Assembly: GCF_036321535.1 (NCBI RefSeq)
Contig: NC_087443.1
Location: 15,562,001 to 15,626,000 of the forward strand
Direction: 5' to 3'
DNA: 64,000 nt
Source: Camelus dromedarius
Lineage: Eukaryota
A program made the position numbers and the translations under genes. The notes under the pieces were generated by a model. It was not told the origin of the DNA. It did not search any database and was given only the letters and a program-made list of their open reading frames with translations. Below, piece by piece: positions 1 through 57,130 of the stretch (its first letter is position 1; every line of letters begins with the position of its first letter).

Positions 1-480
1 GGCGGGGGTCGTTCTCGGCCTCGCCGGAAAGCCGGGGCTTGTGGGGCGGGGCGATCTCGGCTGTGGCGAGACAGCCTGGGAGGGGGGCGCCCTTGGCCGC
101 TCGGGGAGATCTGGTGCGGGGGTCGTTCTCGGCCGCGCCGGGAAAGCCGGGGCATGGGGCGGGGGGCGATCTCGGCTGTGGCTGGACAGTCTGGTCCGGA
201 GGCGGCCTCTGCCGTGCGGGAGAGCCGTGGCGCGGGGAGAGCCGGGGCGGGGTTCGGTCTCCGCTGCGCAGATCGTGGCGGCTGGGGCCTGCGGGCGGGC
301 TGCTGTGGACAGCGCTGAGCCGCCTGCCGAGACTGTTGAGAGGCGCGCGACTCCCGGAGGCTTGGCCTGAGGTGGCTGCTGGGGGCTCGGTGCCTGCCTG
401 GAGGCCGCAGGGAGAAGGCGGGCCTGGGGCTGGGGCTGGCGGCCCTCCAGCTCCGACAAGGGACCTGTGCCCGCGCACTA
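1..480. promoter_or_regulatory. CpG island with G-rich degenerate minisatellite (copy 1, truncated by the window edge)
   Basis: Very GC- and CpG-rich, with repeated ggggtcgttctcggcc, ggggcgatctcggctgtggc and ggggagagcc motifs. Confidence 0.85.
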
Positions 481-811
481 CCAGCTAGTCTTCACCTGCG
501 ATGTCTGTGGGACTGGGTACTCCAAGCATATCTCCAAGCTTGCCTATCACCAGGGTGTGGTCATTGTGACCTGTCCTGGCTGCCAGACCCACCACACCAC
601 CCCGGACAACCTGGGTTGGTTCTCGGACCTGGATGGGAAGAGGAATATTGAAGAAATCCTGGCAGTCAGAAGGGAGAAGGTATGCCAAGTGGCTGGCAAG
701 GGGGTCCAGGAGCTTGTTTTAGAGGCTGCGGGGTCCCCCAAATCCACCAGTGCTGTGGCAGGGGCTGAGGACCAGGATCCCACCCACCCTGGCAAGAAGG
801 AGACCAGCTGA
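300..811 (+). pseudogene. DNLZ: DNLZ (HEP1/Zim17, DNL-type zinc finger) processed retrocopy, copy 1
   Basis: Frame 371-811 reads ...[85 protein letters not shown]..., matching DNLZ (HYQLVYTCKVC...[28 protein letters not shown]) with no introns. The start codon is replaced by CTG at 300 (LLWTAL vs MLRTAL). There are apparent frameshifts at ~350-385 and an in-frame TGA at 368. Confidence 0.93.
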
Positions 812-868
812 CTCACCTTCTGCCTTCAAGAACTATACTCTGGCCCTGGGCTGCTCTGGACGTGCCAA

Positions 869-893
869 TTTTTTTTTTTTTTTTTTTTTTTTT
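869..893 (+). repeat. Poly(T) tract in the presumed DNLZ 3'UTR (T25; T27, T25, T25, T27 in copies 2-5)
   Basis: Counted directly; length varies between units. Confidence 0.95.
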
Positions 894-2959: not shown

Positions 2960-3420
2960 CTCACATCCATCTGTGTAAGAAGAATTGTGCACCATGAACA
3001 AGTGGGAAAGATTCCTGGAATGCAGGGTGGCTTCACCCTAGAAAAATGCATGAGTATATACTCCATTCCATTAACAGTGTGAGGAGAAAAAACAGGATCA
3101 TCCCAATGAATGCCGAGAAGGAAATGGATGAATTCACCACCATCTTCTGAATTTCATGGAAACATGAGAAATTTAAAGGGTCATATACACACAATGTTTT
3201 TTTCTTCAATAACTCTAGCCCAACTGGATAATAACAATTTTTAGAAGTATCACAGCATTATATACTGCGTTATAGCACAATATCACTTCAAACTGTTCCT
3301 CATGCTGTGCGTCAGGTCTTTTAGAGCCTCATCAGAGAAATGGCTCCATTTAGTAGGGATGCTCATTGCAAGAAAAACATGCTTCCTTTATGCCATCGAA
3401 TTTAACATAGATTGTTCAGG
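2960..3420 (+). mobile_element. Degenerate LINE-1 ORF2 (RT region) fragment; repeated in each unit (+11829, +23651, +35481, +47317)
   Basis: caccatgaacaagtgggaaagattcctggaatgcagggtggcttc...aaaaaacaggatcatcccaatgaatgccgagaagg resembles L1 ORF2 HHDQVGFIPGMQGWF...KNHMIISIDAEKAFD. Confidence 0.7.
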
Positions 3421-4512: not shown

Positions 4513-7500
4513 TTAGACCTGAAATGAGATTGAAGGAAAAAACCAAAGCTCTATAGCTTAAAGAAATCCTCACTTTCTAAAACATGTTCTGAGGGGGGCT
4601 AAATTGGGAAGGACCACGTTGGAATGGAACAGTGTTTCTCAGAAGCAGTGACACCCCTCCCTCTGGTGGCCATATGGGAATGGCAAGTGAGCTGCTGGCT
4701 CCATGGATGTCGGACAAACAGGCAACATTCACACAAACACAACATCAGTCTCACTCCAAAAAAAAAACAAACCCTCTAAGATCAAAATTCGGGGTTGCCT
4801 TCTATGTCCTTGTCTTGATCATGACATGACCGGCCACTTACCAAGGGCGGGGTCTCAGGGAGTGTTGATGGAGGCCCTGAGCTGGGCCCTGGGTCCACAG
4901 CAGACAAGGGAGAGGAGGCCGCTGCCTCACAGGACCTGCAGGGAGAGATTGGGAACATGCTGGGTTCACTTGTCCACATCCCCGCCCGGTGTGCCTGGTG
5001 CAGAGAAGTGAGTGTATCCAAACAAAGACATGTAGGGCACTTTGATGTTTCTATTAACAATAAAACACAAACACAACAGGCCGCAAGGAATATGTTATCA
5101 CCTCTAAGAGTAATCCGGAATTGTAAATCACAGACACCTCAAGAACAGTGGGCGTCCCGGGCCTGAAGGCGACGGGAGGCAGCAGAGCCTGACTGATACT
5201 TACAGCGCGTCCCTCTGCTCTGGCTCTGGTGCTGTTGCAGGCAGGAGAGCTGGAGCTGGCTCTCCATCCAGAGGGGCTTCCCCAGCGGGTTCTGGAGCTG
5301 GTGCTGTAGCTCCAAGAAGGGAAACTCTCATCAATAGGACTGCTTTCCCACGTGTCTCCCAAAGCCAGGGGAGCCCTCACTGCTACTCAATCAACTCTCA
5401 CTCCCTGACTCCACCCCCAGGGAGTCTTCCCAGACTCTGCTCTGTGGGGTCCAGTGCCTTCCCCTCCCCACCCACCAGATCCCCCACCCTGCATCCTGCT
5501 CACCATCACTGTCTGCCTCTGGGAGCTCCAGTTGCTCCAGCTGTGCCAGGAGGAGGTGGGCCTGCTGCTCCAGGTCGGAGCCAGGCATGCTGAGCTCTAC
5601 GTAAGCGACAATGGTCTTAAGGCATGGGAATTCTGGAGGCTGGTGGAAATCGTCTGGGTACTGGAACAGCCAGGTGCCCAGGATGGAGGACATGGCCCTG
5701 GGGGTAGTCAGGGGGACACCAGGGTCAGAGGCTTGGCCTTTCCTACCATGCTGGGCTCCCAGGGTAGCCCTGCGGGGACCTGGGCCTTTTTGCCTTTGGC
5801 TCCTGCCCATCCAGAGGCCGGCTCTGCTCCATGTCCCATCTCAGCTGGCAGTGTGGGCAGAGGCGGGCTTGGACACAGAGGAGGGGCTGCTACCAGCCTT
5901 CTGAAGGGACAGCCCTGGCTCAGTGGTGTGACCACCTGTCCACCACTTCAGGGACAACTGTCACACTGCTATGTCCCTCTCCCTGCCCCTCCCCACTGGA
6001 TGGCACATCTGTGAGGACAGGCAGGCTGTGCGTTCTGGGCACTGCCCTCTAAGGGACACGGGAGCTGCTCTATCAGTGCCTGAGCCAGGAGGGAACAGAC
6101 AGGCTGTGTCGGCCATCCAGGCTGCCCACGGGCCTCCTAACTCCACAGACTTTAGCTCCTGCACCTGCTGGCTGCAGAATCCTCCAGGGACCCTGCCTGG
6201 GTCTCCTTCTGCCCCTGCCACTCAGCATCATCAGGATGGGCTCAGCTGTCCCCTGAGGCTCACTGGGTCCCCTGAGCACCAGCTGAGTCCCCACCATTGA
6301 GGCTCCACTAGATGGTGGGCAGGATGCTCTCCACCCCTTGCGTTCTGTGTCTCCCATAGGGCGTGTGGGCAGGGATGGGATGTGTAGGGGATGGTTGTGG
6401 GTTTTCTTCAGGGTTGACTCTGTCTTCTGACCTCCCAGCTGCCCCTCACAGCACCACAGTCCCATCCACAGCTCTCTGGGTCTCGTCTCCTCTTTGCCAG
6501 GGGAAGCCCTAGGACTTTTGCTCTCAAACCAGACTCACTGGATATGTGGGATCCTGGATTCTGCCCACCTTGGACCAACCAGAGAGCCCAGAGCTTCACA
6601 CACTATTTGGGGAAGGAGTCCTTCCCGCTTCAATCCAAAAGACTCACTGTTTCAGCTGGTGCAGGGGTCCCCCGTCCTCTTCCATAACAGGGAGGATGCA
6701 TCCGTATCTAGAGGAGAGCAGGAAGGCGTCACATGGACTGTCCCGAGCACACTAGCTGGATGTGCTGTCTAGTGTGACAGTGTGACACCCCAGAGAATGG
6801 AAGCCCTGGAGGGCAGGGCTGATGTCTGCTCGATGCATTAAATGATGGTTGTTCCTAGAAAAGCCCCTCGCCCTGGGGGCCCTTCCTATACATTGGAGGA
6901 ATGAGTGAGTGAGCCCACCCGGCCCCACAGCGCACATCTGAGTGGGCCTGGGACCCCACTTGTCCCTCCCAGGGATCCCTGCTCTCACTCTCCCAGGACA
7001 GGGACAGCTAATGGCGTCACAGATCCCCTTTGAAATGGGAAAACAGTTCCACCCAAGGCCAAAGTCCCAGTGACACAGGAGGCAGACGCTAGCTCTTGGG
7101 CAGGAGGACAATGACAAATTCGCACAACCACAGCCCCGCCAGCTGCTCTTGCCCTGAGCCAGGTCCCCAGAGAGCACCTTCCGTGAAGGTCTCCCTCTGA
7201 TCCTACCCTCCTAGGGCCTGATCCTCTCTTGACCCCAGGGTGCAGGGGGGAAACTGAGGCTTAGGGAGGTAGAGGAACAATGCCTCATGGCACTGCTGGT
7301 AGGTGGCCAGGTCCCCAATGTCCCATGAAGACAGAGTGCTCACCTCCGGAACAGATGGTCCAGCACCTGCTGGGCGGTGGCAAAAGTTCGATAATTGCCC
7401 AGAAATGTGTTCACATAGGAGGGGTGGCCGCCCAGGACGGCAGGCACCAGCTTTGCCACCAGCTTCTCCAGCCTGTGTCGCTGGAGGCTCCAAGCCCTGT

Positions 7501-8820
7501 AGGCCTCATCCCTGCTCCCTGATGGTCCAGCTCCACCCTGGGGTGGAAAGAGGAGAGATGTGAATCAGAGGCAGCACCGGGGACCCCCAGGCACTTGGGG
7601 CTGGAGATTAGACCGAATCCTCAAGCCTCAAGCTCTTGTGACTGAGGTGGAACAGGGGAGCCCTGAGCAGATCCAAGGTTCTCGGCATCACCAGTACAAG
7701 GGGCGAAGGGCGATGATGAAATGCGTCAGTGCCTCAGATCCCTGTGTCAGCACCGCAGTGCCGGCCCCTCCCTGCATGCACCACTTCATCCCCGTGACTG
7801 CGGTCACACATCCCATTCTAGGGATGAGAACACAGCGGCTGAGCCTGGGGTGGGTGGGCTCAGGATATTCAGTTTAATGTGGACACGTGGGGATGTAGAA
7901 GAAACAGGACAACGTGTAGAAAAATGCAGAAACACCCTTGACTGTACATATACTGAAGTTCTGTCCAAGTCTCTTTCTCAGATTTGGACTCATATGTGGG
8001 CACTGACTTTGCGTCTGGCTAAGGCAGGGCCTGGGATGTGACGGCAGATGGGGGAGACGGGGCATCAGATCCCTTTGCCAGCAGCTCTCTTAAGAGGCAG
8101 CCCAGGGGAGAAGCGGGGCAGCAGTGGGGCCCGGGGCTTCCTGGGTGTGGATTCTCCTCGCTCACACTCACACTGAGCGCGTCCTTGGCTCTGCTGCTGT
8201 CGTGGGGCACCTGCGCCTCCTGCAGGGAGGTGGCGCGGGGTTCTCCATGGACCAGTTCCTGTCCCGTCCCTTGTGTTGAGTCCTGTAAATACAGTGCCCA
8301 GAGGCCAGGCAGCAGCCTCAGAACCCTGTCTGGTTGTCCGACCCATAAGAAATCTCCAGTCCTGACACACATCCACCACTGTCTGCACAGACCTCCTTCA
8401 GGGGCAGAAAAGCTGACAAAGTGGGAGCCTTGTATTCCCATTGACACAGAGAAGATGCCCCTCAGGGGTCCTCTTTCCCCCTTATCAGCCCTGTCCTTGG
8501 GTGCGGCCATGACAGGACCACCAGGTTACCAAGTGTTCAACAAGCCATTCCTGCCCAGAGGGGACACCTCCTCTCAAGTCCCCCTTCAGCGACATGGGGA
8601 TGAGGGAAAGCGGGCCTGCCCAGGGAGGGCCCCCAGTGGAGGCCGGTCCCACACTGGCCTTCTCCAGGCCACCCTGCGTTACCTTAGGTGACCTGCGCAA
8701 AATAGGCCACAGGCGTCTGGGTGGAGGGTTCCACAGACGCCTACAGCCACCGAAGAACCTCGCAGTCCAGGGTTTCCTGGCGGAGAAGCCCCGGGAGACC
8801 GGGAAACAAGAGGAGAACAT
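4513..8820 (-). CDS. RALGDS-like: RalGDS-like REM-domain-only protein, copy 1, 298 aa; join(8683-8820, 8172-8282, 7344-7537, 6648-6707, 5504-5697, 5204-5303, 4842-4935, 4513-4518)
   Basis: All introns are GT-AG, the phases are compatible, and the CDS is 894 nt plus TAA. The exons give DSTQGTGQELVHG..., RLEKLVAKLVPAVLGGHPSYVNTFLGNYRTFATAQQVLDHLFRR, YGCILPVMEEDGGPLHQLKQ and AMSSILGTWLFQYPDDFHQPPEFPCLKTIVAYVELSMPGSDLEQQAHLLLAQLEQ. These align with RALGDS (TLEKLVEHLVPAFQGSDLSYVTIFLCTYRAFTTTQQVLDLLFKR / YGCILPYSDEDGGPQDQLKN / AISSILGTWLDQYSEDFCQPPDFPCLKQLVAYVQLNMPGSDLERRAHLLLAQLE, recalled from memory). An alternative in-frame acceptor at 5309 is possible for exon 6. Confidence 0.85.
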
Positions 8821-11539: not shown

Positions 11540-12310
11540 CCAAGATGTCGAAGGCGTGGCCCGGGCTTCCCGCACAGAGCTTGGGGCAGGGGGCAGGGGC
11601 GGTATGGGCTGTGCGGGGAGGGCCAGAACAGGAGGGGAGAAATCTGCGGAGCAGGGGCAGGGGAAGGGCTGGGCCAGGAGCGGAGAGCCCGGTTGGGGCG
11701 GTCTCGGCTGTGCGGGGTGAGCTGGGGCGGGGGGCGGCGTCTGCTGCGCGGGGAGAGCCTGGGCAGTGGGCAGCCTCAGCCGGGCGGGGAGATCTGGGGC
11801 GGGGAGGACCGAGGCGGGGAGAGCCTGGGCGGGGGTCGTTCTCGGCCTCGCCGGAAAGCCGGGGCTTGTGGGGCGGGGCGATCTCGGCTGTGGCGAGACA
11901 GCCTGGGAGGGGGGCGCCCTTGGCCGCTCGGGGAGATCTGGTGCGGGGGTCGTTCTCGGCCGCGCCGGGAAAGCCGGGGCATGGGGCGGGGGGCGATCTC
12001 GGCTGTGGCTGGACAGTCTGGTCCGGAGGCGGCCTCTGCCGTGCGGGAGAGCCGTGGCGCGGGGAGAGCCGGGGCGGGGTTCGGTCTCCGCTGCGCAGAT
12101 CGTGGCGGCTGGGGCCTGCGGGCGGGCTGCTGTGGACAGCGCTGAGCCGCCTGCCGAGACTGTTGAGAGGCGCGCGACTCCCGGAGGCTTGGCCTGAGGT
12201 GGCTGCTGGGGGCTCGGTGCCTGCCTGGAGGCCGCAGGGAGAAGGCGGGCCTGGGGCTGGGGCTGGCGGCCCTCCAGCTCCGACAAGGGACCTGTGCCCG
12301 CGCACTACCA
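11540..12310. promoter_or_regulatory. CpG island with ~11 degenerate ~36-bp G-rich repeats, copy 2
   Basis: High GC and CpG density with strong G skew on +; contains an internal ~115-bp duplication (11831-11945 vs 11946-12030). Confidence 0.85.
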
Positions 12311-12638
12311 GCTAGTCTTCACCTGCGATGTCTGTGGGACTGGGTACTCCAAGCATATCTCCAAGCTTGCCTATCACCAGGGTGTGGTCATTGTGACCTG
12401 TCCTGGCTGCCAGACCCACCACACCACCCCGGACAACCTGGGTTGGTTCTCGGACCTGGATGGGAAGAGGAATATTGAAGAAATCCTGGCAGTCAGAAGG
12501 GAGAAGGTATGCCAAGTGGCTGGCAAGGGGGTCCAGGAGCTTGTTTTAGAGGCTGCGGGGTCCCCCAAATCCACCAGTGCTGTGGCAGGGGCTGAGGACC
12601 AGGATCCCACCCACCCTGGCAAGAAGGAGACCAGCTGA
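12127..12638 (+). pseudogene. DNLZ: DNLZ processed retrocopy, copy 2
   Basis: Same sequence and lesions as copy 1 (offset +11827). Confidence 0.93.
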
Positions 12639-15600
12639 CTCACCTTCTGCCTTCAAGAACTATACTCTGGCCCTGGGCTGCTCTGGACGTGCCAATTTTT
12701 TTTTTTTTTTTTTTTTTTTTTTAATCAGTAGCTATCGTTTGCAGATGTGGGGCCTGGGGGTCTCCTGCTCTCCCTGGTTCTGGAGTCAGAAGGACTCCCG
12801 AGAACCCTCTGTGGGCTGCAGCTGGGGCCTTCTGCAGCTACAGGCCATGTCCCAGTGGGAAGGGGCTGGACTTGGAGTCTGCGCCCCTCCTGGCTGTGGC
12901 TGTGTGGCCTTGGGCAGGTCACTTTGCCCCTGTGGGCCTCTGTCTTCCTGTCTCCAGATGAAAATGCTCAGAGCGCCACCTTGTCAGGAGGACAGGCAGA
13001 AAGACAAGACTCAGAACAGACATGGGGTGGCTCAGTCCTGCCCCAAATGTCAAGGTCCCCGTCTTGCTGGTTCTCAGGGATTCCAGGAAAGGATGGCCAG
13101 TTAGCCAGTGTACTTCCCGGGTGCAGGATCAGCACCCCCACACCCATCTGCAGATCTTGTCCCTCTGGCCAGACGCAAGGAGGCCCCACAGATCCTTCTG
13201 TGGCACCTGCTGTCCCCTGGACAGCACTGGTGAACAAGTGCCAACTTCAGCCCTGACTTTTGGCCACTGGCCAAGCGGTCAGGAAAGCAGGCCACTCGCT
13301 GTCACCACTGACAGGCCAGGCAGCCGTGGTGACAAGGGGCGTGTGTGCGAGGGGTGCTTTCTGATGGGCGGTGGGCCGCGTGCCCCGCATTTGTCTCCCA
13401 GCCTTGTCTGACTGTCTTCTCAGGATGTTCCTGTGTTTATGAGAGCGTGTTTATTTCCAGAAGCCTTCTGGGCAGTGTGAGCTTCAGCATTAATCACCCA
13501 GCCACCATCTCACAGGATCCCAGCAGGATGCGCGCTCCCAGTTGCCGACCCCCTCGCCCCCGGTCCTCAGCATGGTTCTCGAGGCACTGGCAGTCTGTGC
13601 TCTGACTCGGTTACCCCCGTCCTTCCCCTTGGCGAACAAGCCTGGATTATTCCAGCCCAGAGCCCCCTGTTCCATTTGTGAAGTCCAACCTGGAGGCTGA
13701 GCCAGCAGCCCCACCACTGCCTGTTCTCCTGTGCCACAGAAGCCCCAGGTGACCCACTGGCCTTGAAATGCCTGATCTGCAGGGCTGGGTAGAGGCATGG
13801 CTGCTTTGCTGACCCCAGACAGTTAGGACCTGAATTCGGGGAGGTCCTGGGGGCTGGCTGGACTCTGAGAGTGCAGGGCTGGACCTTGGAGGGCCACTGG
13901 GACCAATCCCGCCCTCCACGGATGCGGAAACAGAGGCCTGTGGTTTGGACATGTATGCTAGCCGTTTTTTATTGTCTGTTTTCTGACACTTTGACATCTG
14001 GGTCCCACTGACCCTGGAGGGGCTGCCCCTCCCAGGGCTAGTCAGTTCCTAGAGACAGTAGAAGATGCCAGTGAGCACACCCAGGGCGGGGACAGACAAG
14101 TAGGGGCAGCCCCTCCACCCAGAGATGCTGATTCCTCCCACCTGCTAGTCCTGCCTCCCTGTTGCTCGCCATGGAAACCACAGGAGAGGCTCTTGCCCAC
14201 TTTTTCCCCTCCCCTGCCTCCTGACCCGCGAGGGCCCTGCTGATGCTCCTCCAAGGGCAGTGCCCCATCTGCACGGATGCTTCTCAGCCCAGCCAGGGCC
14301 CAGTGGTCCAAGTGAGCCCACTTTGTGCGAGGCCAGGCTGCCACTGACTTCAAGACTTCAGAAAGACATCTCAGATGCGAAGGGACCCATCACAGGAATG
14401 TCCATATGTTTTTCCTTCTAAGCCATGACTCAGGAGTAAAAGCAAAATAACATTGTGTTCAGATCCAAGAGACTAAGAGAGTTTGCCGCTGTCAGGCTGT
14501 CACTGAGAGTGAGGACGGTTGGATTGAAGGAAGAAATGAACGAATCCCAGAAGGAACGAGTGGAGAGTGAGACACGAGGTGGGGAAATGGGTGAGTGCAG
14601 GTCTGTCTGACAGTCATGACTATGTAAATCAAGCATCGGGGGTTAGTAAGAACGATTATCATGAGTAATGAGAAGGCAAAAACCTCTGTGGTTCGGTGTT
14701 GTGTCCTGGCCATCACCGGCCACCCTACCAGGGCTCAGGAAGCCTGAGCTGAGGTAGAAAGGGCAGAAAAATACCTATATACTAGTCACTCACATCCATC
14801 TGTGTAAGAAGAATTGTGCACCATGAACAAGTGGGAAAGATTCCTGGAATGCAGGGTGGCTTCACCCTAGAAAAATGCATGAGTATATACTCCATTCCAT
14901 TAACAGTGTGAGGAGAAAAAACAGGATCATCCCAATGAATGCCGAGAAGGAAATGGATGAATTCACCACCATCTTCTGAATTTCATGGAAACATGAGAAA
15001 TTTAAAGGGTCATATACACACAATGTTTTTTTCTTCAATAACTCTAGCCCAACTGGATAATAACAATTTTTAGAAGTATCACAGCATTATATACTGCGTT
15101 ATAGCACAATATCACTTCAAACTGTTCCTCATGCTGTGCGTCAGGTCTTTTAGAGCCTCATCAGAGAAATGGCTCCATTTAGTAGGGATGCTCATTGCAA
15201 GAAAAACATGCTTCCTTTATGCCATCGAATTTAACATAGATTGTTCAGGAGAAACCCCCCCATTATGACAGTCATGCAGAGCGGTATTTCTCCATGTGGT
15301 GACTGATCCCTAAATTCAGTCCCATAGTGGAACTACAGGTCTGTAGGATCTAATATTCTGACTTTGGATCCCTGAGGGAGTCAGAGGTGTCCCCTGAGTC
15401 CTAGAGTGGAGAGCCACACAGCAGGAGAGTCAAGGGGGCCAAAATGAGAACGGAAGTGAGAGCAGATGGTGAGATGTGATGTGGGAGAGCCCTGGGATCA
15501 TGTGGGTCCTGGCTGAGGGGCTCTGTGGGAAGGTCTTCAGGAGTAAACGGCCTGGCAGGTGTGGCAGGTGAGGAAGGTGCCTATGTATGATGACCTCCTG

Positions 15601-16337
15601 TCAGGAAAGCTCCAGGAGTGGCCCCATTTCAAATATATTCCCGAACCTGTCCTATCTTCCCTCCCAACTGTATTCACTCAGCAATACGTGTACATCTTCT
15701 TGGCCAAGTGCTGGGCTGGAGATCTGTAATATGCTCAAAACCAGGCATAGACTCTGCTCCCAGGTGGCTGAGCGTTCGTTATACTACAATCCAGGGAAAG
15801 CCGTTGTAGGTAGAGGAGCAGGTAATTGAAATCAAAACCTGTCCCTCTCCCGCAGTTCTTATCATCACTGTTCTTTCTTCTGACACTTTAGGATACACAG
15901 GATTGTAGCAAAGCCCCCCAGGCGAAAGCAGACTCAGTGCTCTGGGGATAGAAGTCGATGCGGACCCACCTTGGCTGTGCTGAGCAGGAGAAATTCCCCG
16001 GTGAGTGACTCTCACCGAGACCTACTGCCCTGCTTCAATTGTCTCCTAGGGATTCAGGGACAACCCCACTGTCCTGTGAGCAGACCTCTTTCTACCCAAA
16101 TCTACATCACACACACACAAGGCAACATGAATTAAAATATCTCTACTACATTGCACTGATTGTCAAAGTCTTTTATTTAAATAGATATTTACAAACGCAG
16201 ACGGTTGGAGGGAGAGAGGAAGGGACAGAGGTGGACACAGATGGGTGCTGGACACAGACTAACACATGTCTGTGTATCCCAAGGGACAACTTCCACTCAG
16301 TGGCCAACTTCTTTTTGTGAATTACAGTGTATTGAGA

Positions 16338-39989: not shown

Positions 39990-42900
39990 TTAGACCTGAA
40001 ATGAGATTGAAGGAAAAAACCAAAGCTCTATAGCTTAAAGAAATCCTCACTTTCTAAAACATGTTCTGAGGGGGGCTAAATTGGGAAGGACCACGTTGGA
40101 ATGGAACAGTGTTTCTCAGAAGCAGTGACACCCCTCCCTCTGGTGGCCATATGGGAATGGCAAGTGAGCTGCTGGCTCCATGGATGTCGGACAAACAGGC
40201 AACATTCACACAAACACAACATCAGTCTCACTGCTGGAAAAAAACAAACCCTCTAAGATCAAAATTCGGGGTTGCCTTCTATGTCCTTGTCTTGATCATG
40301 ACATGACCGGCCACTTACCAAGGGCGGGGTCTCAGGGAGTGTTGATGGAGGCCCTGAGCTGGGCCCTGGGTCCACAGCAGACAAGGGAGAGGAGGCCGCT
40401 GCCTCACAGGACCTGCAGGGAGAGATTGGGAACATGCTGGGTTCACTTGTCCACATCCCCGCCCGGTGTGCCTGGTGCAGAGAAGTGAGTGTATCCAAAC
40501 AAAGACATGTAGGGCACTTTGATGTTTCTATTAACAATAAAACACAAACACAACAGGCCGCAAGGAATATGTTATCACCTCTAAGAGTAATCCGGAATTG
40601 TAAATCACAGACACCTCAAGAACAGTGGGCGTCCCGGGCCTGAAGGCGACGGGAGGCAGCAGAGCCTGACTGATACTTACAGCGCGTCCCTCTGCTCTGG
40701 CTCTGGTGCTGTTGCAGGCAGGAGAGCTGGAGCTGGCTCTCCATCCAGAGGGGCTTCCCCAGCGGGTTCTGGAGCTGGTGCTGTAGCTCCAAGAAGGGAA
40801 ACTCTCATCAATAGGACTGCTTTCCCACGTGTCTCCCAAAGCCAGGGGAGCCCTCACTGCTACTCAATCAACTCTCACTCCCTGACTCCACCCCCAGGGA
40901 GTCTTCCCAGACTCTGCTCTGTGGGGTCCAGTGCCTTCCCCTCCCCACCCACCAGATCCCCCACCCTGCATCCTGCTCACCATCACTGTCTGCCTCTGGG
41001 AGCTCCAGTTGCTCCAGCTGTGCCAGGAGGAGGTGGGCCTGCTGCTCCAGGTCGGAGCCAGGCATGCTGAGCTCTACGTAAGCGACAATGGTCTTAAGGC
41101 ATGGGAATTCTGGAGGCTGGTGGAAATCGTCTGGGTACTGGAACAGCCAGGTGCCCAGGATGGAGGACATGGCCCTGGGGGTAGTCAGGGGGACACCAGG
41201 GTCAGAGGCTTGGCCTTTCCTACCATGCTGGGCTCCCAGGGTAGCCCTGCGGGGACCTGGGCCTTTTTGCCTTTGGCTCCTGCCCATCCAGAGGCCGGCT
41301 CTGCTCCATGTCCCATCTCAGCTGGCAGTGTGGGCAGAGGCGGGCTTGGACACAGAGGAGGGGTTGCTACCAGCCTTCTGAAGGGACAGCCCTGGCTCAG
41401 TGGTGTGACCACCTGTCCACCACTTCAGGGACACCTGTCACACTGCTATGTCCCTCTCCCTGCCCCTCCCCACTGGATGGCACATCTGTGAGGACAGGCA
41501 GGCTGTGCGTTCTGGGCACTGCCCTCTAAGGGACACGGGAGCTGCTCTATCAGTGCCTGAGCCAGGAGGGAACAGACAGGCTGTGTCGGCCATCCAGGCT
41601 GCCCACGGGCCTCCTAACTCCACAGACTTTAGCTCCTGCACCTGCTGGCTGCAGAATCCTCCAGGGACCCTGCCTGGGTCTCCTTCTGCCCCTGCCACTC
41701 AGCATCATCAGGATGGGCTCAGCTGTCCCCTGAGGCTCACTGGGTCCCCTGAGCACCAGCTGAGTCCCCACCATTGAGGCTCCACTAGATGGTGGGCAGG
41801 ATGCTCTCCACCCCTTGCGTTCTGTGTCTCCCATAGGGCGTGTGGGCAGGGATGGGATGTGTAGGGGATGGTTGTGGGTTTTCTTCAGGGTTGACTCTGT
41901 CTTCTGACCTCCCAGCTGCCCCTCACAGCACCACAGTCCCATCCACAGCTCTCTGGGTCTCGTCTCCTCTTTGCCAGGGGAAGCCCTAGGACTTTTGCTC
42001 TCAAACCAGACTCACTGGATATGTGGGATCCTGGATTCTGCCCACCTTGGACCAACCAGAGAGCCCAGAGCTTCACACACTATTTGGGGAAGGAGTCCTT
42101 CACGCTTCAATCCAAAAGACTCACTGTTTCAGCTGGTGCAGGGGTCCCCCGTCCTCTTCCATAACAGGGAGGATGCATCCGTATCTAGAGGAGAGCAGGA
42201 AGGCGTCACATGGACTGTCCCGAGCACACTAGCTGGATGTGCTGTCTAGTGTGACAGTGTGACACCCCAGAGAATGGAAGCCCTGGAGGGCAGGGCTGAT
42301 GTCTGCTCGATGCATTAAATGATGGTTGTTCCTAGAAAAGCCCCTCACCCTGGGGGCCCTTCCTATACATTGGAGGAATGAGTGAGTGAGCCCACCCGGC
42401 CCCACAGCGCACATCTGAGTGGGCCTGGGACCCCACTTGTCCCTCCCAGGGATCCCTGCTCTCACTCTCCCAGGACAGGGACAGCTAATGGCGTCACAGA
42501 TCCCCTTTGAAATGGGAAAACAGTTCCACCCAAGGCCAAAGTCCCAGTGACACAGGAGGCAGACGCTAGCTCTTGGGCAGGAGGACAATGACAAATTCGC
42601 ACAACCACAGCCCCGCCAGCTGCTCTTGCCCTGAGCCAGGTCCCCAGAGAGCACCTTCCGTGAAGGTCTCCCTCTGATCCTACCCTCCTAGGGCCTGATC
42701 CTCTCTTGACCCCAGGGTGCAGGGGGGAAACTGAGGCTTAGGGAGGTAGAGGAACAATGCCTCATGGCACTGCTGGTAGGTGGCCAGGTCCCCAATGTCC
42801 CATGAAGACAGAGTGCTCACCTCCGGAACAGATGGTCCAGCACCTGCTGGGCGGTGGCAAAAGTTCGATAATTGCCCAGAAATGTGTTCACATAGGAGGG

Positions 42901-44297
42901 GTGGCCGCCCAGGACGGCAGGCACCAGCTTTGCCACCAGCTTCTCCAGCCTGTGTCGCTGGAGGCTCCAAGCCCTGTAGGCCTCATCCCTGCTCCCTGAT
43001 GGTCCAGCTCCACCCTGGGGTGGAAAGAGGAGAGATGTGAATCAGAGGCAGCACCGGGGACCCCCAGGCACTTGGGGCTGGAGATTAGACCGAATCCTCA
43101 AGCCTCAAGCTCTTGTGACTGAGGTGGAAGAGGGGAGCCCTGAGCAGATCCAAGGTTCTCGGCATCACCAGTACGAGGGGCGAAGGGCGATGATGAAATG
43201 CATCAGTGCCTCAGATCCCTGTGTCAGCACCGCAGTGCCGGCCCCTCCCTGCATGCACCACTTCATCCCCGTGACTGCGGTCACACATCCCATTCTAGGG
43301 ATGAGAACACAGCGGCTGAGCCTGGGGTGGGTGGGCTCAGGATATTCAGTTTAATGTGGACACGTGGGGATGTAGAAGAAACAGGACAACGTGTAGAAAA
43401 ATGCAGAAACACCCTTGACTGTACATATACTGAAGTTCTGTCCAAGTCTCTTTCTCAGATTTGGACTCATATGTGGGCACTGACTTTGCGTCTGGCTAAG
43501 GCAGGGCCTGGGATGTGACGGCAGATGGGGGAGACGGGGCATCAGATCCCTTTGCCAGCAGCTCTCTTAAGAGGCAGCCCAGGGGAGAAGCGGGGCAGCA
43601 GTGGGGCCCGGGGCTTCCTGGGTGTGGATTCTCCTCGCTCACACTCACACTGAGCGCGTCCTTGGCTCTGCTGCTGTCGTGGGGCACCTGCGCCTCCTGC
43701 AGGGAGGTGGCACGGGGTTCTCCATGGACCAGTTCCTGTCCCGTCCCTTGTGTTGAGTCCTGTAAATACAGTGCCCAGAGGCCAGGCAGCAGCCTCAGAA
43801 CCCTGTCTGGTTGTCCGACCCATAAGCAATCTCCAGTCCTGACACACATCCACCACTGTCTGCACAGACCTCCTTCAGGGGCAGAAAAGCTGACAAAGTG
43901 GGAGCCTTGTATTCCCATTGACACAGAGAAGATGCCCCTCAGGGGTCCTCTTTCCCCCTTATCAGCCCTGTCCTTGGGTGCGGCCATGACAGGACCACCA
44001 GGTTACCAAGTGTTCAACAAGCCATTCCTGCCCAGAGGGGACACCTCCTCTCAAGTCCCCCTTCAGCGACATGGAGATGAGGGAAAGCGGGCCTGCCCAG
44101 GGAGGGCCCCCAATGGAGGCCGGTCCCACACTGGCCTTCTCCAGGCCACCCTGCGTTACCTTAGGTGACCTGCGCAAAATAGGCCACAGGCGTCTGGGTG
44201 GAGGGTTCCACAGACGCCTACAGCCACCGAAGAACCTCGCAGTCCAGGGTTTCCTGGCGGAGAAGCCCCGGGAGACCGGGAAACAAGAGGAGAATAT
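39990..44297 (-). pseudogene. RALGDS-like: RalGDS-like REM-only gene, copy 4, start codon lost (ATG->ATA); join(44160-44297, 43649-43759, 42821-43014, 42125-42184, 40981-41174, 40681-40780, 40319-40412, 39990-39995)
   Basis: The plus strand reads gagaatatcc at 44290-44299, where the other copies read gagaacatcc. The rest of the frame and the splice sites are intact. Confidence 0.7.
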
Positions 44298-51825: not shown

Positions 51826-54800
51826 TTAGACCTGAAATGAGATTGAAGGAAAAAACCAAAGCTCTATAGCTTAAAGAAATCCTCACTTTCTAAAACATGT
51901 TCTGAGGGGGGCTAAATTGGGAAGGACCACGTTGGAATGGAACAGTGTTTCTCAGAAGCAGTGACACCCCTCCCTCTGGTGGCCATATGGGAATGGCAAG
52001 TGAGCTGCTGGCTCCATGGATGTCGGACAAACAGGCAACATTCACACAAACACAACATCAGTCTCACTGCTGGAAAAAAACAAACCCTCTAAGATCAAAA
52101 TTCGGGGTTGCCTTCTATGTCCTTGTCTTGATCATGACATGACCGGCCACTTACCAAGGGCGGGGTCTCAGGGAGTGTTGATGGAGGCCCTGAGCTGGGC
52201 ACCGGGTCCACAGCAGACAAGGGAGAGGAGGCCGCTGCCTCACAGGACCTGCAGGGAGAGATTGGGAACATGCTGGGTTCACTTGTCCACATCCCCGCCC
52301 GGTGTGCCTGGTGCAGAGAAGTGAGTGTATCCAAACAAAGACATGTAGGGCACTTTGATGTTTCTATTAACAATAAAACACAAACACAACAGGCCGCAAG
52401 GAATATGTTATCACCTCTAAGAGTAATCCGGAATTGTAAATCACAGACACCTCAAGAACAGTGGGCGTCCCGGGCCTGAAGGCGACGGGAGGCAGCAGAG
52501 CCTGACTGATACTTACAGCGCGTCCCTCTGCTCTGGCTCTGGTGCTGTTGCAGGCAGGAGAGCTGGAGCTGGCTCTCCATCCAGAGGGGCTTCCCCAGCG
52601 GGTTCTGGAGCTGGTGCTGTAGCTCCAAGAAGGGAAACTCTCATCAATAGGACTGCTTTCCCACGTGTCTCCCAAAGCCAGGGGAGCCCTCACTGCTACT
52701 CAATCAACTCTCACTCCCTGACTCCACCCCCAGGGAGTCTTCCCAGACTCTGCTCTGTGGGGTCCAGTGCCTTCCCCTCCCCACCCACCAGATCCCCCAC
52801 CCTGCATCCTGCTCACCATCACTGTCTGCCTCTGGGAGCTCCAGTTGCTCCAGCTGTGCCAGGAGGAGGTGGGCCTGCTGCTCCAGGTCGGAGCCAGGCA
52901 TGCTGAGCTCTACGTAAGCGACAATGGTCTTAAGGCATGGGAATTCTGGAGGCTGGTGGAAATCGTCTGGGTACTGGAACAGCCAGGTGCCCAGGATGGA
53001 GGACATGGCCCTGGGGGTAGTCAGGGGGACACCAGGGTCAGAGGCTTGGCCTTTCCTACCATGCTGGGCTCCCAGGGTAGCCCTGCGGGGACCTGGGCCT
53101 TTTTGCCTTTGGCTCCTGCCCATCCAGAGGCCGGCTCTGCTCCATGTCCCATCTCAGCTGGCAGTGTGGGCAGAGGCGGGCTTGGACACAGAGGAGGGGC
53201 TGCTACCAGCCTTCTGAAGGGACAGCCCTGGCTCAGTGGTGTGACCACCTGTCCACCACTTCAGGGACAACTGTCACACTGCTATGTCCCTCTCCCTGCC
53301 CCTCCCCACTGGATGGCACATCTGTGAGGACAGGCAGGCTGTGCGTTCTGGGCACTGCCCTCTAAGGGACACGGGAGCTGCTCTATCAGTGCCTGAGCCA
53401 GGAGGGAACAGACAGGCTGTGTCGGCCATCCAGGCTGCCCACGGGCCTCCTAACTCCACAGACTTTAGCTCCTGCACCTGCTGGCTGCAGAATCCTCCAG
53501 GGACCCTGCCTGGGTCTCCTTCTGCCCCTGCCACTCAGCATCATCAGGATGGGCTCAGCTGTCCCCTGAGGCTCACTGGGTCCCCTGAGCACCAGCTGAG
53601 TCCCCACCATTGAGGCTCCACAAGATGGTGGGCAGGATGCTCTCCACCCCTTGCATTCTGTGTCTCCCAAAGGGCGTGTGGGCAGGGATGGGATGTGTAG
53701 GGGATGGTTGTGGGTTTTCTTCAGGGTTGACTCTTTCCTCTGACCTCCCAGCTGCCCCTCACAGCACCACAGTCCCATCCACAGCTCTCTGGGTCTCGTC
53801 TCCTCTTTGCCAGGGGAAGCCCTAGGACTTTTGCTCTCAAACCAGACTCACTGGATATGTGGGATCCTGGATTCTGCCCACCTTGGACCAACCAGAGAGC
53901 CCAGAGCTTCACACACTATTTGGGGAAGGAGTCCTTCCCGCTTCAATCCAAAAGACTCACTGTTTCAGCTGGTGCAGGGGTCCCCCGTCCTCTTCCATAA
54001 CAGGGAGGATGCATCCGTATCTAGAGGAGAGCAGGAAGGCGTCACATGGACTGTCCCGAGCACACTAGCTGGATGTGCTGTCTAGTGTGACAGTGTGACA
54101 CCCCAGAGAATGGAAGCCCTGGAGGGCAGGGCTGATGTCTGCTCGATGCATTAAATGATGGTTGTTCCTAGAAAAGCCCCTCGCCCTGGGGGCCCTTCCT
54201 ATACATTGGAGGAATGAGTGAGTGAGCCCACCCGGCCCCACAGCGCACATCTGAGTGGGCCTGGGACCCCACTTGTCCCTCCCAGGGATCCCTGCTCTCA
54301 CTCTCCCAGGACAGGGACAGCTAATGGCGTCACAGATCCCCTTTGAAATGGGAAAACAGTTCCACCCAAGGCCAAAGTCCCAGTGACACAGGAGGCAGAC
54401 GCTAGCTCTTGGGCAGGAGGACAATGACAAATTCGCACAACCACAGCCCCGCCAGCTGCTCTTGCCCTGAGCCAGGTCCCCAGAGAGCACCTTCCGTGAA
54501 GGTCTCCCTCTGATCCTACCCTCCTAGGGCCTGATCCTCTCTTGACCCCAGGGTGCAGGGGGGGAATCTGAGGCTTAGGGATGTAGAGGAACAATGCCTC
54601 ATGGCACTGCTGGTAGGTGGCCAGGTCCCCAATGTCCCATGAAGACAAAGTGCTCAACTTCGGAACAGATGGTCCAGCACCTGCTGGGCGGTGGCAAAAG
54701 TTCGACAATTGCCCAGAAATGTGTTCACATAGGAGGGGTGGCCACCCAGGACGGCAGGCACCAGCTTTGCCACCAGCTTCTCCAGCCTGTGTCGCTGGAG

Positions 54801-56134
54801 GCTTCAAGCCTTGCAGGCTTCATCCCTGCTCCCTGATTGTCCAGCTACACCCTGGGGTGGAAAGTGGAGAGATGTGAATCAGAGGCAGCACCGGGGACCC
54901 CCTGGCACTTGGGGCTGGAGATTAGACCGAATCCTCAAGCCGCAAGCTCTTGTGACTGAGGTGGAACAGGGGAGCCCTGAGCAGATCCAAGGTTCTCGGC
55001 ATCACCAGTACAAGGGGCGAAGGGCGATGATGAAATGCATCAGTGCCTCAGATCCCTGTGTCAGCACCGCAGTGCCGGCCCCTCCCTGCATGCACCACTT
55101 CATCCCCGTGACTGCGGTCACACATCCCATTCTAGGGATGAGAACACAGCGGCTGAGCCTGGGGTGGGTGGGCTCAGGATATTCAGTTTAATGTGGACAC
55201 GTGGGGATGTAGAAGAAACAGGACAACGTGTAGAAAAATGCAGAAACACCCTTGACTGTACATATACTGAAGTTCTGTCCAAGTCTCTTTCTCAGATTTG
55301 GACTCATATGTGGGCACTGACTTTGCGTCTGGCCAAGGAAGGGCCTGGGTTGTGACGGCAGATGGGGGAGACGGGGCATCAGATCCCTTTGCCAGCAGCT
55401 CTCTTAAGAGGCAGCCCAGGGGAGAAGCGGGGCAGCAGTGGGGCCCGGGGCTTCCTGGGTGTGGATTCTCCTCGCTCACACTCACACTGAGCGCGTCCTT
55501 GGCTCTGCTGCTGTCGTGGGGCACCTGCGCCTCCTGCAGGGAGGTGGCGCGGGGTTCTCCATGGACCAGGTCCTGTCCCGTCCCTTGTGTTGAGTCCTGT
55601 AAATACAGTGCCCAGAGGCCAGGCAGCAGCCTCAGAACCCTGTCTGGTTGTCCGACCCATAAGCAATCTCCAGTCCTGACACACATCCACCACTGTCTGC
55701 ACAGACCTCCTTCAGGGGCAGAAAAGCTGACAAAGTGGGAGCCTTGTATTCCCATTGACACAGAGAAGATGCCCCTCAGGGGTCCTCTTTCCCCCTTATC
55801 AGCCCTGTCCTTGGGTGCAGCCATGACAGGACCACCAGGTTACCAAGTGTTCAACAAGCCATTCCTGCCCAGAGGGGACACCTCCTCTCAAGTCCCCCTC
55901 CAGCGACATGGAGATGAGGGAAAGCGGGCCTGCCCAGGGAGGGCCCCCAGTGGAGGCCGGTCCTACACTGGCCTTCTCCAGGCCACCCTGCGTTACCTTA
56001 GGTGACCTGCGCAAAATAGGCCACAGGCGTCTGGGTGGAGGGTTCCACAGACGCCTACAGCCACCGAAGAACCTCGCAGTCCAGGGTTTCCTGGCGGAGA
56101 AGCCCCGGGAGACCGGGAAACAAGAGGAGAACAT
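51826..56134 (-). pseudogene. RALGDS-like: RalGDS-like gene, terminal copy 5, disabled; exons 55997-56134, 55486-55596, 54658-54851, 53961-54020, 52817-53010, 52517-52616, 52155-52248, 51826-51831
   Basis: Exon 3 has TGG->TGA (plus tca at 54804-54806), and its donor is changed GT->TT (plus c->a at 54657). Several missense changes are also present. Confidence 0.8.
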
Positions 56135-56659
56135 CCTGTGTCTTCAACTGTCTCCAGCCAAGTGCGCTGGCTCTGGAGCCGTCACTAGAATGTGGGTGCC
56201 TGGTAACCAGGTTCCATTTCGGTTGGGGTCTGTGAAGGATGTGATGTCACTTCCTGGGGTCCACTTCCTGGAAGCCCCTCCTCAGACAACACCTCCACAC
56301 ACTGCCCTCTGGGCTGCTTGCCTGCTCACGCCCTTCTCCACGTGAACCCGCATCTTGCACAGTTATAGCAGCCCCGCCGTCTCTAGAGCTGCCGGGGAGG
56401 GTCTGCATGCAGCTTTGAGGAGACGCCCTGGCTTCCAGACTCCACCCCTCATACTTACCTGTTCTCCATCCTGGGGAAGTCCTGGTGTGTGTCCAGGCCG
56501 GTGTGTCTCCCCAGCTGCACAGTGGGAATGATTTTAGCAAGTACTTCTAGGGACGTCCTGAGGTGCAAGTGGAATAAGGCCTAAAAAATTGGAGAGTGAT
56601 GTCACCTGGAGGTGTTGCCTGCGACCCAAGTTATCTTCCTCTGACTTCCTCCTCCATTT

Positions 56660-57130
56660 CTGTTCCTCTTCTGATCCTACCTTATAATCCTTATGTAATG
56701 TACAGTGGTGCATTTCTGTCTGTGTTTGTCTTTGTGTGTGTGTGTGTGTGTGTTTCTAAGCCAGTACTCATACTTTGTGTGACCAGCAGAACACTGCTCC
56801 AGAATGGGAGGGATTTGCAAGAGCACCCTGAAGTCTCAGGGTTTCTAATTTCCAAAGCAAACTAAATGAGTGGTCTTAGGCCCTGGCTTGGATTTCAGAG
56901 CTCACAACTGAAGGCCATGCAGGTAGCAGGGCTGAACCTGCGTGCAAAGGCAGTCTGGTTCCACTATGCACACTTATTGCCATGGTGCTGTGGGCAGGGA
57001 AACTGTCCACTTCTCTAGTCAAACTGTCTGCCATCTTAACTTCGGTTGGACATGCAGTGACCTGGGGACACACGGGCTTATGGTGGCTGTCATCACCAGA
57101 CAGACTTGAAAATCTCATTTGCTAGTTGCA
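56660..57130. other. Old diverged paralog of the unit's 9345-9830 segment (5' flank of the RALGDS-like gene)
   Basis: Alignable blocks include aaggccatgcaggtagcagggctg, aaactgtccacttctct, the (TG)n tract and gcaagagca.cctga. Identity is roughly 70% by eye. Confidence 0.8.

Follow-up and report, generated by a model that had tools for sequence, protein, structure and literature searches.

Within a 64,000-nucleotide stretch of camel DNA (the window, by which we mean the whole stretch that was analysed) lies a series of head-to-tail units, each carrying a spliced gene related to RALGDS, a retrocopy of DNLZ, and a CpG island, which raises the question of how such a unit was put together, how old the array is, and whether the gene in it still encodes a protein. 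We consider it likely that the locus is an old, probably autosomal macrosatellite, a mosaic of a RALGDS-derived core and a DNLZ/CpG spacer that undergoes concerted evolution and whose gene is most likely coding. As a gene-bearing macrosatellite, or tandem amplicon, the camelid array is a known kind of structure and a good example of it.

Self-BLAST, TRF, and unit alignments delimit positions 1-57123 as a tandem array of 4.83 head-to-tail units of 11,825-11,834 bp each (Table 1), in agreement with an earlier note on this DNA, which had described a macrosatellite of at least 4.8 units with about 99% identity. The self-comparison gave one diagonal family, in which 1-45319 matches 11828-57123 at 99.38% and additional lags correspond to two, three, and four units, and in TRF a 115-bp repeat recurs at spacings of 11,825, 11,830, and 11,834 bp. 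There are zero N runs in the window. The internal units share 99.63-99.92% pairwise identity, and the partial edge unit U5 is 98.2-98.3% identical to the others. U5 is 99.5% identical as far as the equivalent of U2 position 21000, past which the identity is 92.5%, 75%, and 73.6% in three successive blocks reaching 57123; over its final ~650 bp, it thus falls from 99.5% to about 74%, and unrelated flank lies beyond. The earlier note was right to place an edge of the array inside the window, and its end point, 56660, is where near-identity stops, but detectable homology reaches 57123. Because spacer X is missing after U5, the array ends with the core, and the left array edge in a dromedary assembly likewise finishes in diverged core sequence. 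The right flank was also considered as a diverged continuation of the unit, which we rejected, as 57124-64000 is unrelated to the unit. No CpG island or recognisable coding sequence was found in this flank; its segment 57134-57987 has the look of an interspersed repeat, with matches at 65-75% identity to several unrelated sites within camelid loci. Rfam and ARAGORN gave no matches in the whole window.

Table 1. Features of the array and its flank in the window
Feature	Position	Strand	Remarks
Array unit U1	1-11827		window opens inside array
Array unit U2	11828-23652
Array unit U3	23653-35482
Array unit U4	35483-47316
Array unit U5, partial	47317-57123		right edge of array at 57123
U5 edge zone, not homogenised	56470..57123	.	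identity to internal units falls from 92.5% to 74-75%
Core duplicon with RALGDS-like gene, U2 copy	14359..21657	-	unit mapping
Core duplicon, remaining copies	2530-9832, 26181-33487, 38011-45321, 49847-57123
Spacer X, U2 copy	21658..23340	.	core to CpG island; no recognisable coding sequence
Spacer X, all copies	9833-11515, 21658-23340, 33488-35170, 45322-47004
Gene, U2 copy	16607..20645	-	intact, 316 aa; spliced model, RasGEF_N Pfam matches
Gene, U2 copy, coding exons	20645-20508, 20107-19997, 19362-19169, 18532-18473, 17522-17329, 17128-17029, 16760-16607	-	introns GT-AG throughout
Gene, U1 copy	4782..8820	-	intact; protein identical to U2 protein
Gene, U3 copy	28429..32467	-	intact; 1 aa change, G to V, in tail
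Gene, U4 copy	40259..44297	-	ATG to ATA; remaining ORF open
Gene, U5 (edge) copy	52095..56134	-	pseudogene; premature stop at codon 99 (W to stop)
CpG island, U1/U2 boundary	11651..12250	.	CpG scan
CpG islands, others	1-450, 23451-24100, 35201-35900, 47051-47750	.
115-bp minisatellite	11815-12064, 23640-23889, 35470-35719, 47304-47553		TRF rows
Processed DNLZ pseudogene, U2 copy	12057..14352	+	homology to alpaca DNLZ locus L006
Processed DNLZ pseudogene, other copies	230-2523, 23882-26174, 35712-38004, 47546-49840	+
Flank outside array	57124..64000	.	AT-richer; no match to unit

The three elements that had been described as co-amplified, namely, the spliced RALGDS-derived gene, the DNLZ retrocopy, and the CpG island, were all found in every unit. 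In the reading that we propose, two blocks make up this mosaic unit. One is a core duplicon of 7.3 kb, in which the 5' part of RALGDS is present as a truncated duplicate made at the DNA level; the other is a 4.5-kb spacer comprising ordinary DNA along with the processed DNLZ pseudogene and the CpG island. The DNLZ copy contains the 5'UTR, three fused exons, and about 1.1 kb of the parent 3'UTR, the last split by a 594-bp insert (13654-14247). In its CDS-like part (12126-12638), the exons of the alpaca DNLZ locus L006 (3001-3192, 3736-3875, and 4646-4814) are contiguous and the introns of 543 and 770 bp are gone. The description of a plus-strand retrocopy therefore stands as far as the absence of both introns is concerned, but the copy is a pseudogene, in which the ATG has become CTG in camel and ATC in alpaca and two +1 frameshifts, common to both, part the N-terminus from the zinc-finger frame. 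The zf-DNL profile matches the unit with E=2e-24, the 146-codon frame of the copy has no ATG, and dN/dS against the parent is 0.56-0.74, which is not different from 1. The parental DNLZ-CARD9 pair lies on CM108723.1 in alpaca, as against CM108730.1 for the array. At the 3' end of the DNLZ homology (14352), we found no A-run, poly(A) signal, or target-site duplication hallmark; the distal AATAAA of the parent is 1.26 kb past the homology end, and the copy appears to have been cut off at the core duplicon junction, with its hallmarks lost rather than contradicted. Judged from its sequence, it is a dead processed pseudogene and a passenger in the unit. Insertion of the core into the DNLZ retrocopy was considered as well, and the remaining 3'UTR was sought past the array edges; neither flank matched, and this candidate was rejected.

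The CpG islands are 450-700 bp long, with a GC content of 0.75-0.76 and an o/e ratio of 0.78-0.83 (0.32 window-wide), values above the thresholds of Gardiner-Garden and Frommer (>200 bp, GC >50%, o/e >0.6). They are made up of the GC-rich 115-bp minisatellite together with DNLZ-derived 5'UTR and exon-1 sequence, and the minisatellite copies align with the DNLZ 5'UTR. We read the island as retrocopied DNLZ 5'UTR that has grown into the 115-bp minisatellite; it is present in all units, as the earlier note had stated, but is not a third independent element, since it derives from the 5' end of the retrocopy. On the minus strand, the island sits about 2.8 kb upstream of the ATG of the gene in the left-hand unit (the ATG at 20645, for instance, has the island at 23451-24100 upstream of it), and this DNLZ-derived island in the neighbouring unit may be the promoter of the gene.

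The spliced gene model, built on the Camelus ferus protein P0154, places a minus-strand gene with seven coding exons and a product of 316 aa in five of five units, three of the copies being intact and two disabled. The gene had been called complete in each unit, which holds for it as a transcription unit but not as a RALGDS gene, of which it is a truncated derivative. The start loss in U4 is a plus-strand C to T change at the equivalent of 20643, and in the U5 copy the exon-3 donor has changed from GT to TT and exon 3 holds a substitution cluster. Exons 2-6 are colinear with RALGDS residues 71-297 at 48% identity (E=5e-62), and the gene has intron positions in common with mouse-lineage RALGDS, including the same 60-nt exon, the same 194/195-nt exon, and their boundaries. 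With intron positions shared, we regard exons 2-6 as a DNA-level copy of RALGDS residues about 70-297. The whole gene would be composed of a non-RALGDS first coding exon, these RALGDS exons, and a novel last exon, with a new donor site arising within the exon that in RALGDS continues into the CDC25 domain. In tblastn, the RALGDS protein P0041 matches the unit over residues 117-255, and its residues 247-370 gave weak low-complexity matches placed in the GC-rich minisatellite.

RasGEF_N (PF00618) is the only Pfam domain in the gene product (E=6e-09 with exon 3 alone and 2e-13 with the alpaca protein), and a Pfam search of the long stop-to-stop frames of one unit found nothing besides RasGEF_N and zf-DNL. 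The CDC25/RasGEF catalytic domain (PF00617) was absent by Pfam and by tblastn with full RALGDS on the unit, and the same two approaches found no RA domain in the unit or the protein; the RA domain in P0286, an old Camelus ferus model, belongs to the neighbouring RASSF4, which was fused into it. The gene thus resembles the RALGDS/RGL family in exons 2-6, which cover the REM (RasGEF_N) domain and the beginning of the proline-rich linker, and in its intron positions, and differs from it in its first and last coding exons. Because the product has no CDC25 domain, it cannot be a nucleotide-exchange factor, and because it also has no Ras-association domain and measures 316 aa as against about 900 aa in RALGDS, it cannot be a RalGEF.

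For the alpaca protein, AlphaFold2 predicts a helical domain at residues 92-225 (pLDDT about 90) and disorder at both ends. The high-probability Foldseek matches were exclusively SOS1/SOS2 REM-CDC25 modules, at E-values of 0.37 or more, which lack significance, and the same protein had no sequence match in the PDB. The gene is most likely still protein-coding, its helical REM domain being predicted to fold between a disordered N-terminus and a proline-rich tail, and its product could be a REM-only modulator or decoy of Ras-family GEF signalling. There is some chance, though a minor one, that the array is instead the outcome of neutral amplification by unequal crossing-over, with the RALGDS-like copies being relics whose frames are kept by homogenisation from a recently intact template. 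The two disabled copies, the lack of any catalytic domain, and the many relatives annotated as short or fused fragments in other species would fit such relics, as would the camel-alpaca divergence, which is about equal in exons (48/951 sites, 5.0%) and introns (5.3%). However, the alpaca gene also has an intact ORF and intact splice sites, and all 12 splice sites are kept in both genera despite 8% divergence. In addition, non-synonymous change is less than half of synonymous change between camel and alpaca (dN/dS = 0.48, Fisher p=0.01), a value that rests on 48 substitutions and that gene conversion or CpG-driven synonymous change can distort. The DNLZ passenger of the same unit, by contrast, has lost its ATG and acquired frameshifts, and bovids and rabbit keep REM-only relatives with the same first exon.

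The age of the array can be approached through alpaca, whose array repeats every 12.58 kb and aligns colinearly with the entire camel unit (one 11.9-kb HSP, 92.1%), while its units are 99.4-99.9% identical among themselves. This combination of a shared architecture with near-identity inside each genus supports the concerted evolution that had been proposed for the locus, and it fits an array of this unit architecture that would be older than the Camelus-Vicugna split and homogenised per lineage. In the tree, the camel and alpaca array units form separate genus-specific clades; such clades are equally expected from separate amplification of an ancestral two-copy structure. A dispersed alpaca copy of 14359-21522 (L001, 93% identity) branches with the units of the alpaca array, which indicates that exchange or a recent dispersal has also occurred within alpaca. 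Both tree results are compatible with independent amplification, in which the camel-alpaca ancestor had one or two units, each lineage expanded them later, and the high identity reflects youth, but we consider this unlikely. The alpaca and camel units are colinear full circle, including the core-X junction (21657/21658) and the DNLZ-core junction (14352/14359), and therefore the head-to-tail junction predates the Camelus-Vicugna split. Moreover, the non-homogenised edge has diverged by 25%, far more than camel has from alpaca, and this suggests that the first duplication is old. If the array is old and evolves in concert, as we prefer, amplification may have proceeded by unequal crossing-over from core to core, and the core-(spacer-core)n layout that this would produce fits the observation that the array begins and ends with the core. 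Later homogenisation through unequal exchange and gene conversion would have stopped short of the outermost few hundred bases.

Annotated members of a REM-only RALGDS-like family are found in bovids, pig, cetaceans, cat, rabbit, hedgehog, rhinoceros, rodents, and elephant; the term lineage-specific, used in the earlier note, is thus apt for the unit composition (Camelus, Vicugna) but not for the gene family, which extends across many mammals. The window gene is 100% identical to Camelus bactrianus XP_010968236.2 over two exons and 89-92% identical to the Camelus ferus and alpaca models, and a first exon beginning MFS(S/C)C followed by the REM domain also occurs in the cattle and rabbit relatives. 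The annotated RALGDS-like records were predicted automatically, and many are fragmentary or fuse neighbouring units by read-through. A link to human CDRT15/CDRT15L2 may be suggested by the NCBI name of a rabbit protein and by the human N-terminus; searching proteins with this rabbit 'CDRT15-like' entry brought up no primate CDRT15. CDRT15L2 is thus a possible human relative of the camelid gene and serves as a lead only. We would give only a slim chance to the broad proposal that the gene belongs to a widespread, undescribed boreoeutherian MFS(S/C)C family, perhaps including CDRT15/CDRT15L2, which has been arrayed repeatedly and whose members act in the germ line as stand-alone REM modulators of Ras/Ral exchange factors, with the camelid CpG island as a new promoter that also drives convergent transcription.

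On record CM070317.1 of a dromedary assembly, the array is placed at 15.51-15.53 Mb, and RASSF4, with DEPP1 nested in it, is found 2.8 Mb away at 18.31 Mb; we take this gene pair to mark the region orthologous to autosomal human 10q11.21. A Camelus ferus short-read scaffold (L007), which is a mosaic of 83-96% identities with internal duplications, also links to RASSF4/DEPP1 and was used solely for that linkage. Going by this synteny and by the human and cattle maps, the array is probably autosomal. This runs against the earlier suggestion of a testis-expressed ampliconic family on a sex chromosome, which we now regard as very unlikely, as the cattle and pig family members are on records whose lengths match the autosomes BTA28 and SSC14, and the alpaca array record is the eleventh accession in its assembly series and not the last, which also suggests an autosome. 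In favour of the suggestion, X and Y ampliconic regions typically hold gene-bearing homogeneous arrays. The o/e ratio of about 0.8 in the CpG island would suggest an unmethylated germ-line state. Furthermore, CDRT15L2, with the proviso on homology given above, is named alongside germ-cell genes in a list of transcripts differentially expressed in Sertoli-cell-only testes (PMC10406544). That an assembler expanded a single genomic copy, as the very high between-unit identity might suggest, is scarcely credible, because the units differ by 9-44 substitutions plus indels at phylogenetically structured variant sites (for example, a U1/U2 pattern versus U3/U4), the edge unit decays in identity, and arrays of the same unit are present in two other independent chromosome-level assemblies (dromedary and alpaca).

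Among known systems, the TSPY array of the human Y, with units of about 20.4 kb that contain the spliced TSPY gene and a co-amplified second transcription unit, shares with the camelid array kilobase-scale head-to-tail units that carry a complete multi-exon gene and a passenger and are kept near-identical by unequal exchange and conversion. However, TSPY is Y-linked and testis-expressed, whereas the camelid array shows linkage to RASSF4/DEPP1, and the gene in it is no full-length paralogue but a truncated fragment with a regulatory domain. D4Z4/DUX4, with 3.3-kb CpG-rich, retrogene-derived units, is likewise an autosomal macrosatellite whose array is conserved across species by concerted evolution and whose CpG-rich part descends from a retrotransposed mRNA. 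The coding payload of D4Z4, an array known for epigenetic silencing and contraction phenotypes, is the retrogene itself. In the camelid unit, by contrast, a spliced gene from DNA-level duplication is the payload, and the DNLZ retrocopy is dead, with expansion confined to its CpG-rich 5' end.

A literature search found no paper on the gene family in camelids, on the array or its unit, on the DNLZ passenger, or on how the CpG island arose, and searches for RALGDS with 'ampliconic', or for macrosatellites in alpaca, found nothing relevant. The locus offers a clean worked example of a macrosatellite unit built from a partial duplicate of a signalling gene, a retrocopy, and a retrocopy-derived CpG island, and of an array that has been kept uniform through the divergence of two genera even as its edges decay. 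Should the REM-only protein be produced, it would amount to a natural experiment on a RasGEF regulatory domain acting alone. For camelid genomics, the array accounts for a set of fragmented, chimeric automatic gene models and flags the locus as probably copy-number variable. As a lead for the wider family only, a pig study names 'RALGDS' as copy-number variable (PMC3716681).

The window contains no N runs, and self-BLAST returned one diagonal family only, which pairs 1-45319 with 11828-57123 at 99.38% identity and is accompanied by additional matches offset by two, three and four units. A 115-bp repeat detected by TRF recurs at spacings of 11,825, 11,830 and 11,834 bp. These searches confirm the macrosatellite, with its edge inside the window, that an earlier note had read from the sequence: there are five head-to-tail units (U1-U5), the last partial, and a RALGDS-like gene, a DNLZ retrocopy and a CpG island are co-amplified in every one, as had been proposed. 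The array is a newly resolved example of an already known type of structure. The internal units are 99.63-99.92% identical pairwise, and U5 is 98.2-98.3% identical to each other unit. Identity in U5 is uneven, at 99.5% as far as U2-equivalent 21000 and at 92.5%, 75% and 73.6% in the final three blocks before 57123; near-identity stops at 56660, where the array had been thought to end, but homology runs on to 57123. Because the variants between units are structured (e.g., U1/U2 variants versus U3/U4 variants) and two further assemblies contain the same array, assembly expansion was ruled out. Upstream of the gene, a (TG)n microsatellite (about 21251 in U2, and equivalents) shows length differences of 4-12 bp between U1/U2, U3 and U4 and could mark individual units.

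Array units in the window, state of their gene copies, and coding exons of the U2 gene
Feature	Position	Strand	Gene copy
Unit U1	1-11827		intact; protein same as that of U2
Unit U2	11828-23652		intact
Unit U3	23653-35482		intact; single-residue difference
Unit U4	35483-47316		start codon changed to ATA
Unit U5, partial	47317-57123		codon 99 is a premature stop; donor of exon 3 is TT instead of GT
U2 coding exon 1	20645-20508	minus	
U2 coding exon 2	20107-19997	minus	
U2 coding exon 3	19362-19169	minus	
U2 coding exon 4	18532-18473	minus	
U2 coding exon 5	17522-17329	minus	
U2 coding exon 6	17128-17029	minus	
U2 coding exon 7	16760-16607	minus	

RALGDS-like pieces lie in minus-strand stop-to-stop frames, with RasGEF_N (REM) confirmed by Pfam. 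With one exon frame as the query, an exhaustive HMMER search found 400 relatives. C. bactrianus XP_010968236.2 is 100% identical to the window gene across two exons, which places the window in Camelus. Guided by the C. ferus protein P0154, we modelled the U2 gene as seven coding exons with introns that are all GT-AG and a 316-aa product, which is colinear with authentic RALGDS over residues 71-297 of the latter (48% identity, E=5e-62); its first 47 residues do not align to RALGDS. The counterpart exons of Apodemus RALGDS match the camelid gene in boundaries and sizes (a 60-nt exon in common; an exon of 195 nt in Apodemus and 194 nt in the camelid gene; common boundaries before 'SSTQ' and where the proline-rich exon begins). 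These coincident boundaries indicate that exons 2-6 are a DNA-level partial duplicate of RALGDS, and a retrocopy origin was rejected on the same ground. The homology stops within the long RALGDS exon leading into the catalytic CDC25 domain; the CDC25 and Ras-association (RA) regions have no match anywhere in the unit, and beyond residue 255 only weak low-complexity matches, to the minisatellite, were seen. RasGEF_N is the sole Pfam domain found. For the alpaca orthologue, AlphaFold2 with a 22-sequence alignment predicted disordered ends and, between them at residues 92-225, a helical domain of high confidence (pLDDT about 90); the only high-probability Foldseek matches were the REM-CDC25 modules of SOS1 and SOS2, with E-values that were not significant, and no PDB chain matched by sequence. 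The spliced RALGDS-derived gene of the earlier note is thus present with seven exons in every unit, but it is a REM-only fragment, and its U4 and U5 copies are disabled. In U5 exon 3 (54658-54851), where substitutions are clustered, five amino-acid changes and the stop fall inside 17 codons and the donor is lost, a pattern more suggestive of a short tract converted from a diverged paralogue than of scattered decay.

The plus-strand frame at 12198-12635 encodes a DNL zinc finger (Pfam, E=2e-24) that is 80% identical to alpaca DNLZ. The alpaca parent (locus L006; exons 3001-3192, 3736-3875 and 4646-4814) adjoins CARD9, and its three exons are contiguous in the window, so the copy lacks both introns (543 and 770 bp). 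Homology begins 69 nt upstream of the parent ATG, extends about 1.1 kb beyond the stop, where 13654-14247 is a 594-bp insert, and ends at 14352. This end has neither an A-run nor a poly(A) signal, and the parent's distal AATAAA lies 1.26 kb beyond it. The copy is a retrocopy on the plus strand, as first described, but it is dead: camel has CTG and alpaca has ATC in place of the ATG, the zinc finger is out of frame with the N-terminus owing to two single-base insertions present in both genera, and the zinc-finger frame has no ATG. Judged from these lesions, it is a pseudogene. Its dN/dS against the parent (0.56-0.74) is not different from 1. Since dS is 0.12-0.15 between copy and parent and 0.087 between the camel and alpaca copies, retroposition would predate the Camelus-Vicugna split, though by no large factor. 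The DNLZ-like stop is followed by a stretch of about 30 T (12696-12723 and equivalents), which differs in length among units and occupies the place of the parent's proximal AATAAA (L006 4879). By eye, a MIR-like core is present in the part derived from the DNLZ 3'UTR (12890-12975), and the parent locus has one too.

Each unit has one CpG island (450-700 bp, GC 0.75-0.76, o/e 0.78-0.83; window-wide o/e 0.32), which spans the 115-bp minisatellite together with the 5'UTR and exon 1 that derive from DNLZ. Because a motif of about 60 nt is common to the minisatellite copies, the retrocopy 5' end and the alpaca parent 5'UTR, the island is the retrocopied DNLZ 5' end, expanded in tandem; it is co-amplified as claimed, but as a DNLZ derivative and not an independent third element. 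With respect to the minus-strand gene of the unit on its left, each island is upstream, about 2.8 kb from the ATG. The edge copy in U5 has no island upstream, and the same copy has the stop codon, which is compatible with the island as a putative promoter and fits equally well with escape from homogenisation at the edge. The automatic C. ferus models P0007 and P0286 run into the GC-rich minisatellite (window 11651-12250) and yield chimeric proteins, one named 'forkhead box protein C1-like' and another with RASSF4 exons fused on and a translated minisatellite frame at its end; these are annotation artefacts due to the array.

In alpaca, the array occupies 7.98-8.08 Mb of CM108730.1 (GCA_048564905.1), with a period of 12.58 kb and unit-to-unit identity of 99.4-99.9%. 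A whole camel unit matches an alpaca unit in one 11.9-kb HSP (92.1%) that spans both the junction of DNLZ with core (14352/14359) and that of core with spacer (21657/21658), and the added length of the alpaca unit consists of extra minisatellite copies. In the core-region tree, Camelus and alpaca units form separate clades (support 1.0 and 0.97). The common junctions and genus-specific clades, together with the high identity within each genus, indicate concerted evolution, as the earlier note had suggested, of an array that predates the Camelus-Vicugna split; independent expansion in each lineage from a two-copy ancestor is an unlikely alternative reading of this pattern. The alpaca gene copy has an intact ORF and splice sites; between camel and alpaca, dN is 0.041, dS 0.087 and dN/dS 0.48 (Fisher p=0.01), with an intron divergence of 5.3%. 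A stretch that is L1-like by eye (14785-15086, minus-strand frames) supplies alternative 3' exons of the alpaca isoform X1 (P0163).

Elsewhere in alpaca, at 36.75 Mb, a dispersed copy has only 14359-21522 in common with the unit and therefore defines the core duplicon. The right edge of the array terminates in such a core, after which the equivalent of the spacer (21658-23340) is absent, and the flank (57124-64000) has no relation to the unit, no CpG island and no recognisable coding sequence. Its first 850 bp or so (57134-57987) are 65-75% identical to several unrelated camelid loci in both orientations, so the array looks to abut an interspersed repeat. The left edge in dromedary (L011; CM070317.1, 15.51-15.53 Mb) is 99.3-99.6% identical to the window units as far as U2-equivalent 16896, followed by a 1.75-kb insertion, core at 78-89% down to 15527, and unrelated DNA. 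Thus, both array ends are cores whose outer parts escaped homogenisation. We infer a core-(spacer-core)n array in which unequal exchange between cores would have driven both amplification and homogenisation. The L011 insertion (11617-13363) sits precisely where high array identity stops and may be a block to homogenisation at the left end.

In an old C. ferus gene model, RALGDS-like exons are fused to RA-domain exons that resemble RASSF4, and DEPP is adjacent. On the array-bearing dromedary record, DEPP1 (exact protein) is nested at 18.31 Mb in a 321-aa RA + SARAH gene; alpaca DNLZ-CARD9 and the alpaca array lie on different records. RASSF4 with nested DEPP1 marks human 10q11.21, and the records of the cattle and pig relatives presumably correspond to BTA28 and SSC14. 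An autosomal location is therefore likely, and the sex linkage once considered is unsupported. In C. ferus KB016338.1 (L007, 40560-55086), a RALGDS-like copy with 83-96% mosaic identity to the window adjoins RASSF4/DEPP1; it has an internal duplication and hardly any DNLZ sequence, and is explained either by a paralogous cluster or by collapse of the short-read assembly.

We found no paper on this array or the camelid RALGDS-like family. In pig, one study counts 'RALGDS' as a copy-number variable gene (PMC3716681), and that name may refer to these paralogues. REM-only relatives are found in cattle, yak, banteng, sheep, pig, dolphins, whales, cat, rabbit, hedgehog, rhinoceros, pocket mouse, kangaroo rat, beaver and elephant, frequently predicted as fragments or read-through fusions of multiple units. 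The MFS(S/C)C start motif of the camel gene also opens cattle and rabbit proteins, and one rabbit member is named 'CMT1A duplicated region transcript 15 protein-like' by NCBI. The N-terminus of human CDRT15 is similar to this motif. A protein search with the rabbit 'CDRT15-like' protein gave no primate CDRT15, and kinship of the camel gene with CDRT15 is offered as a lead only.
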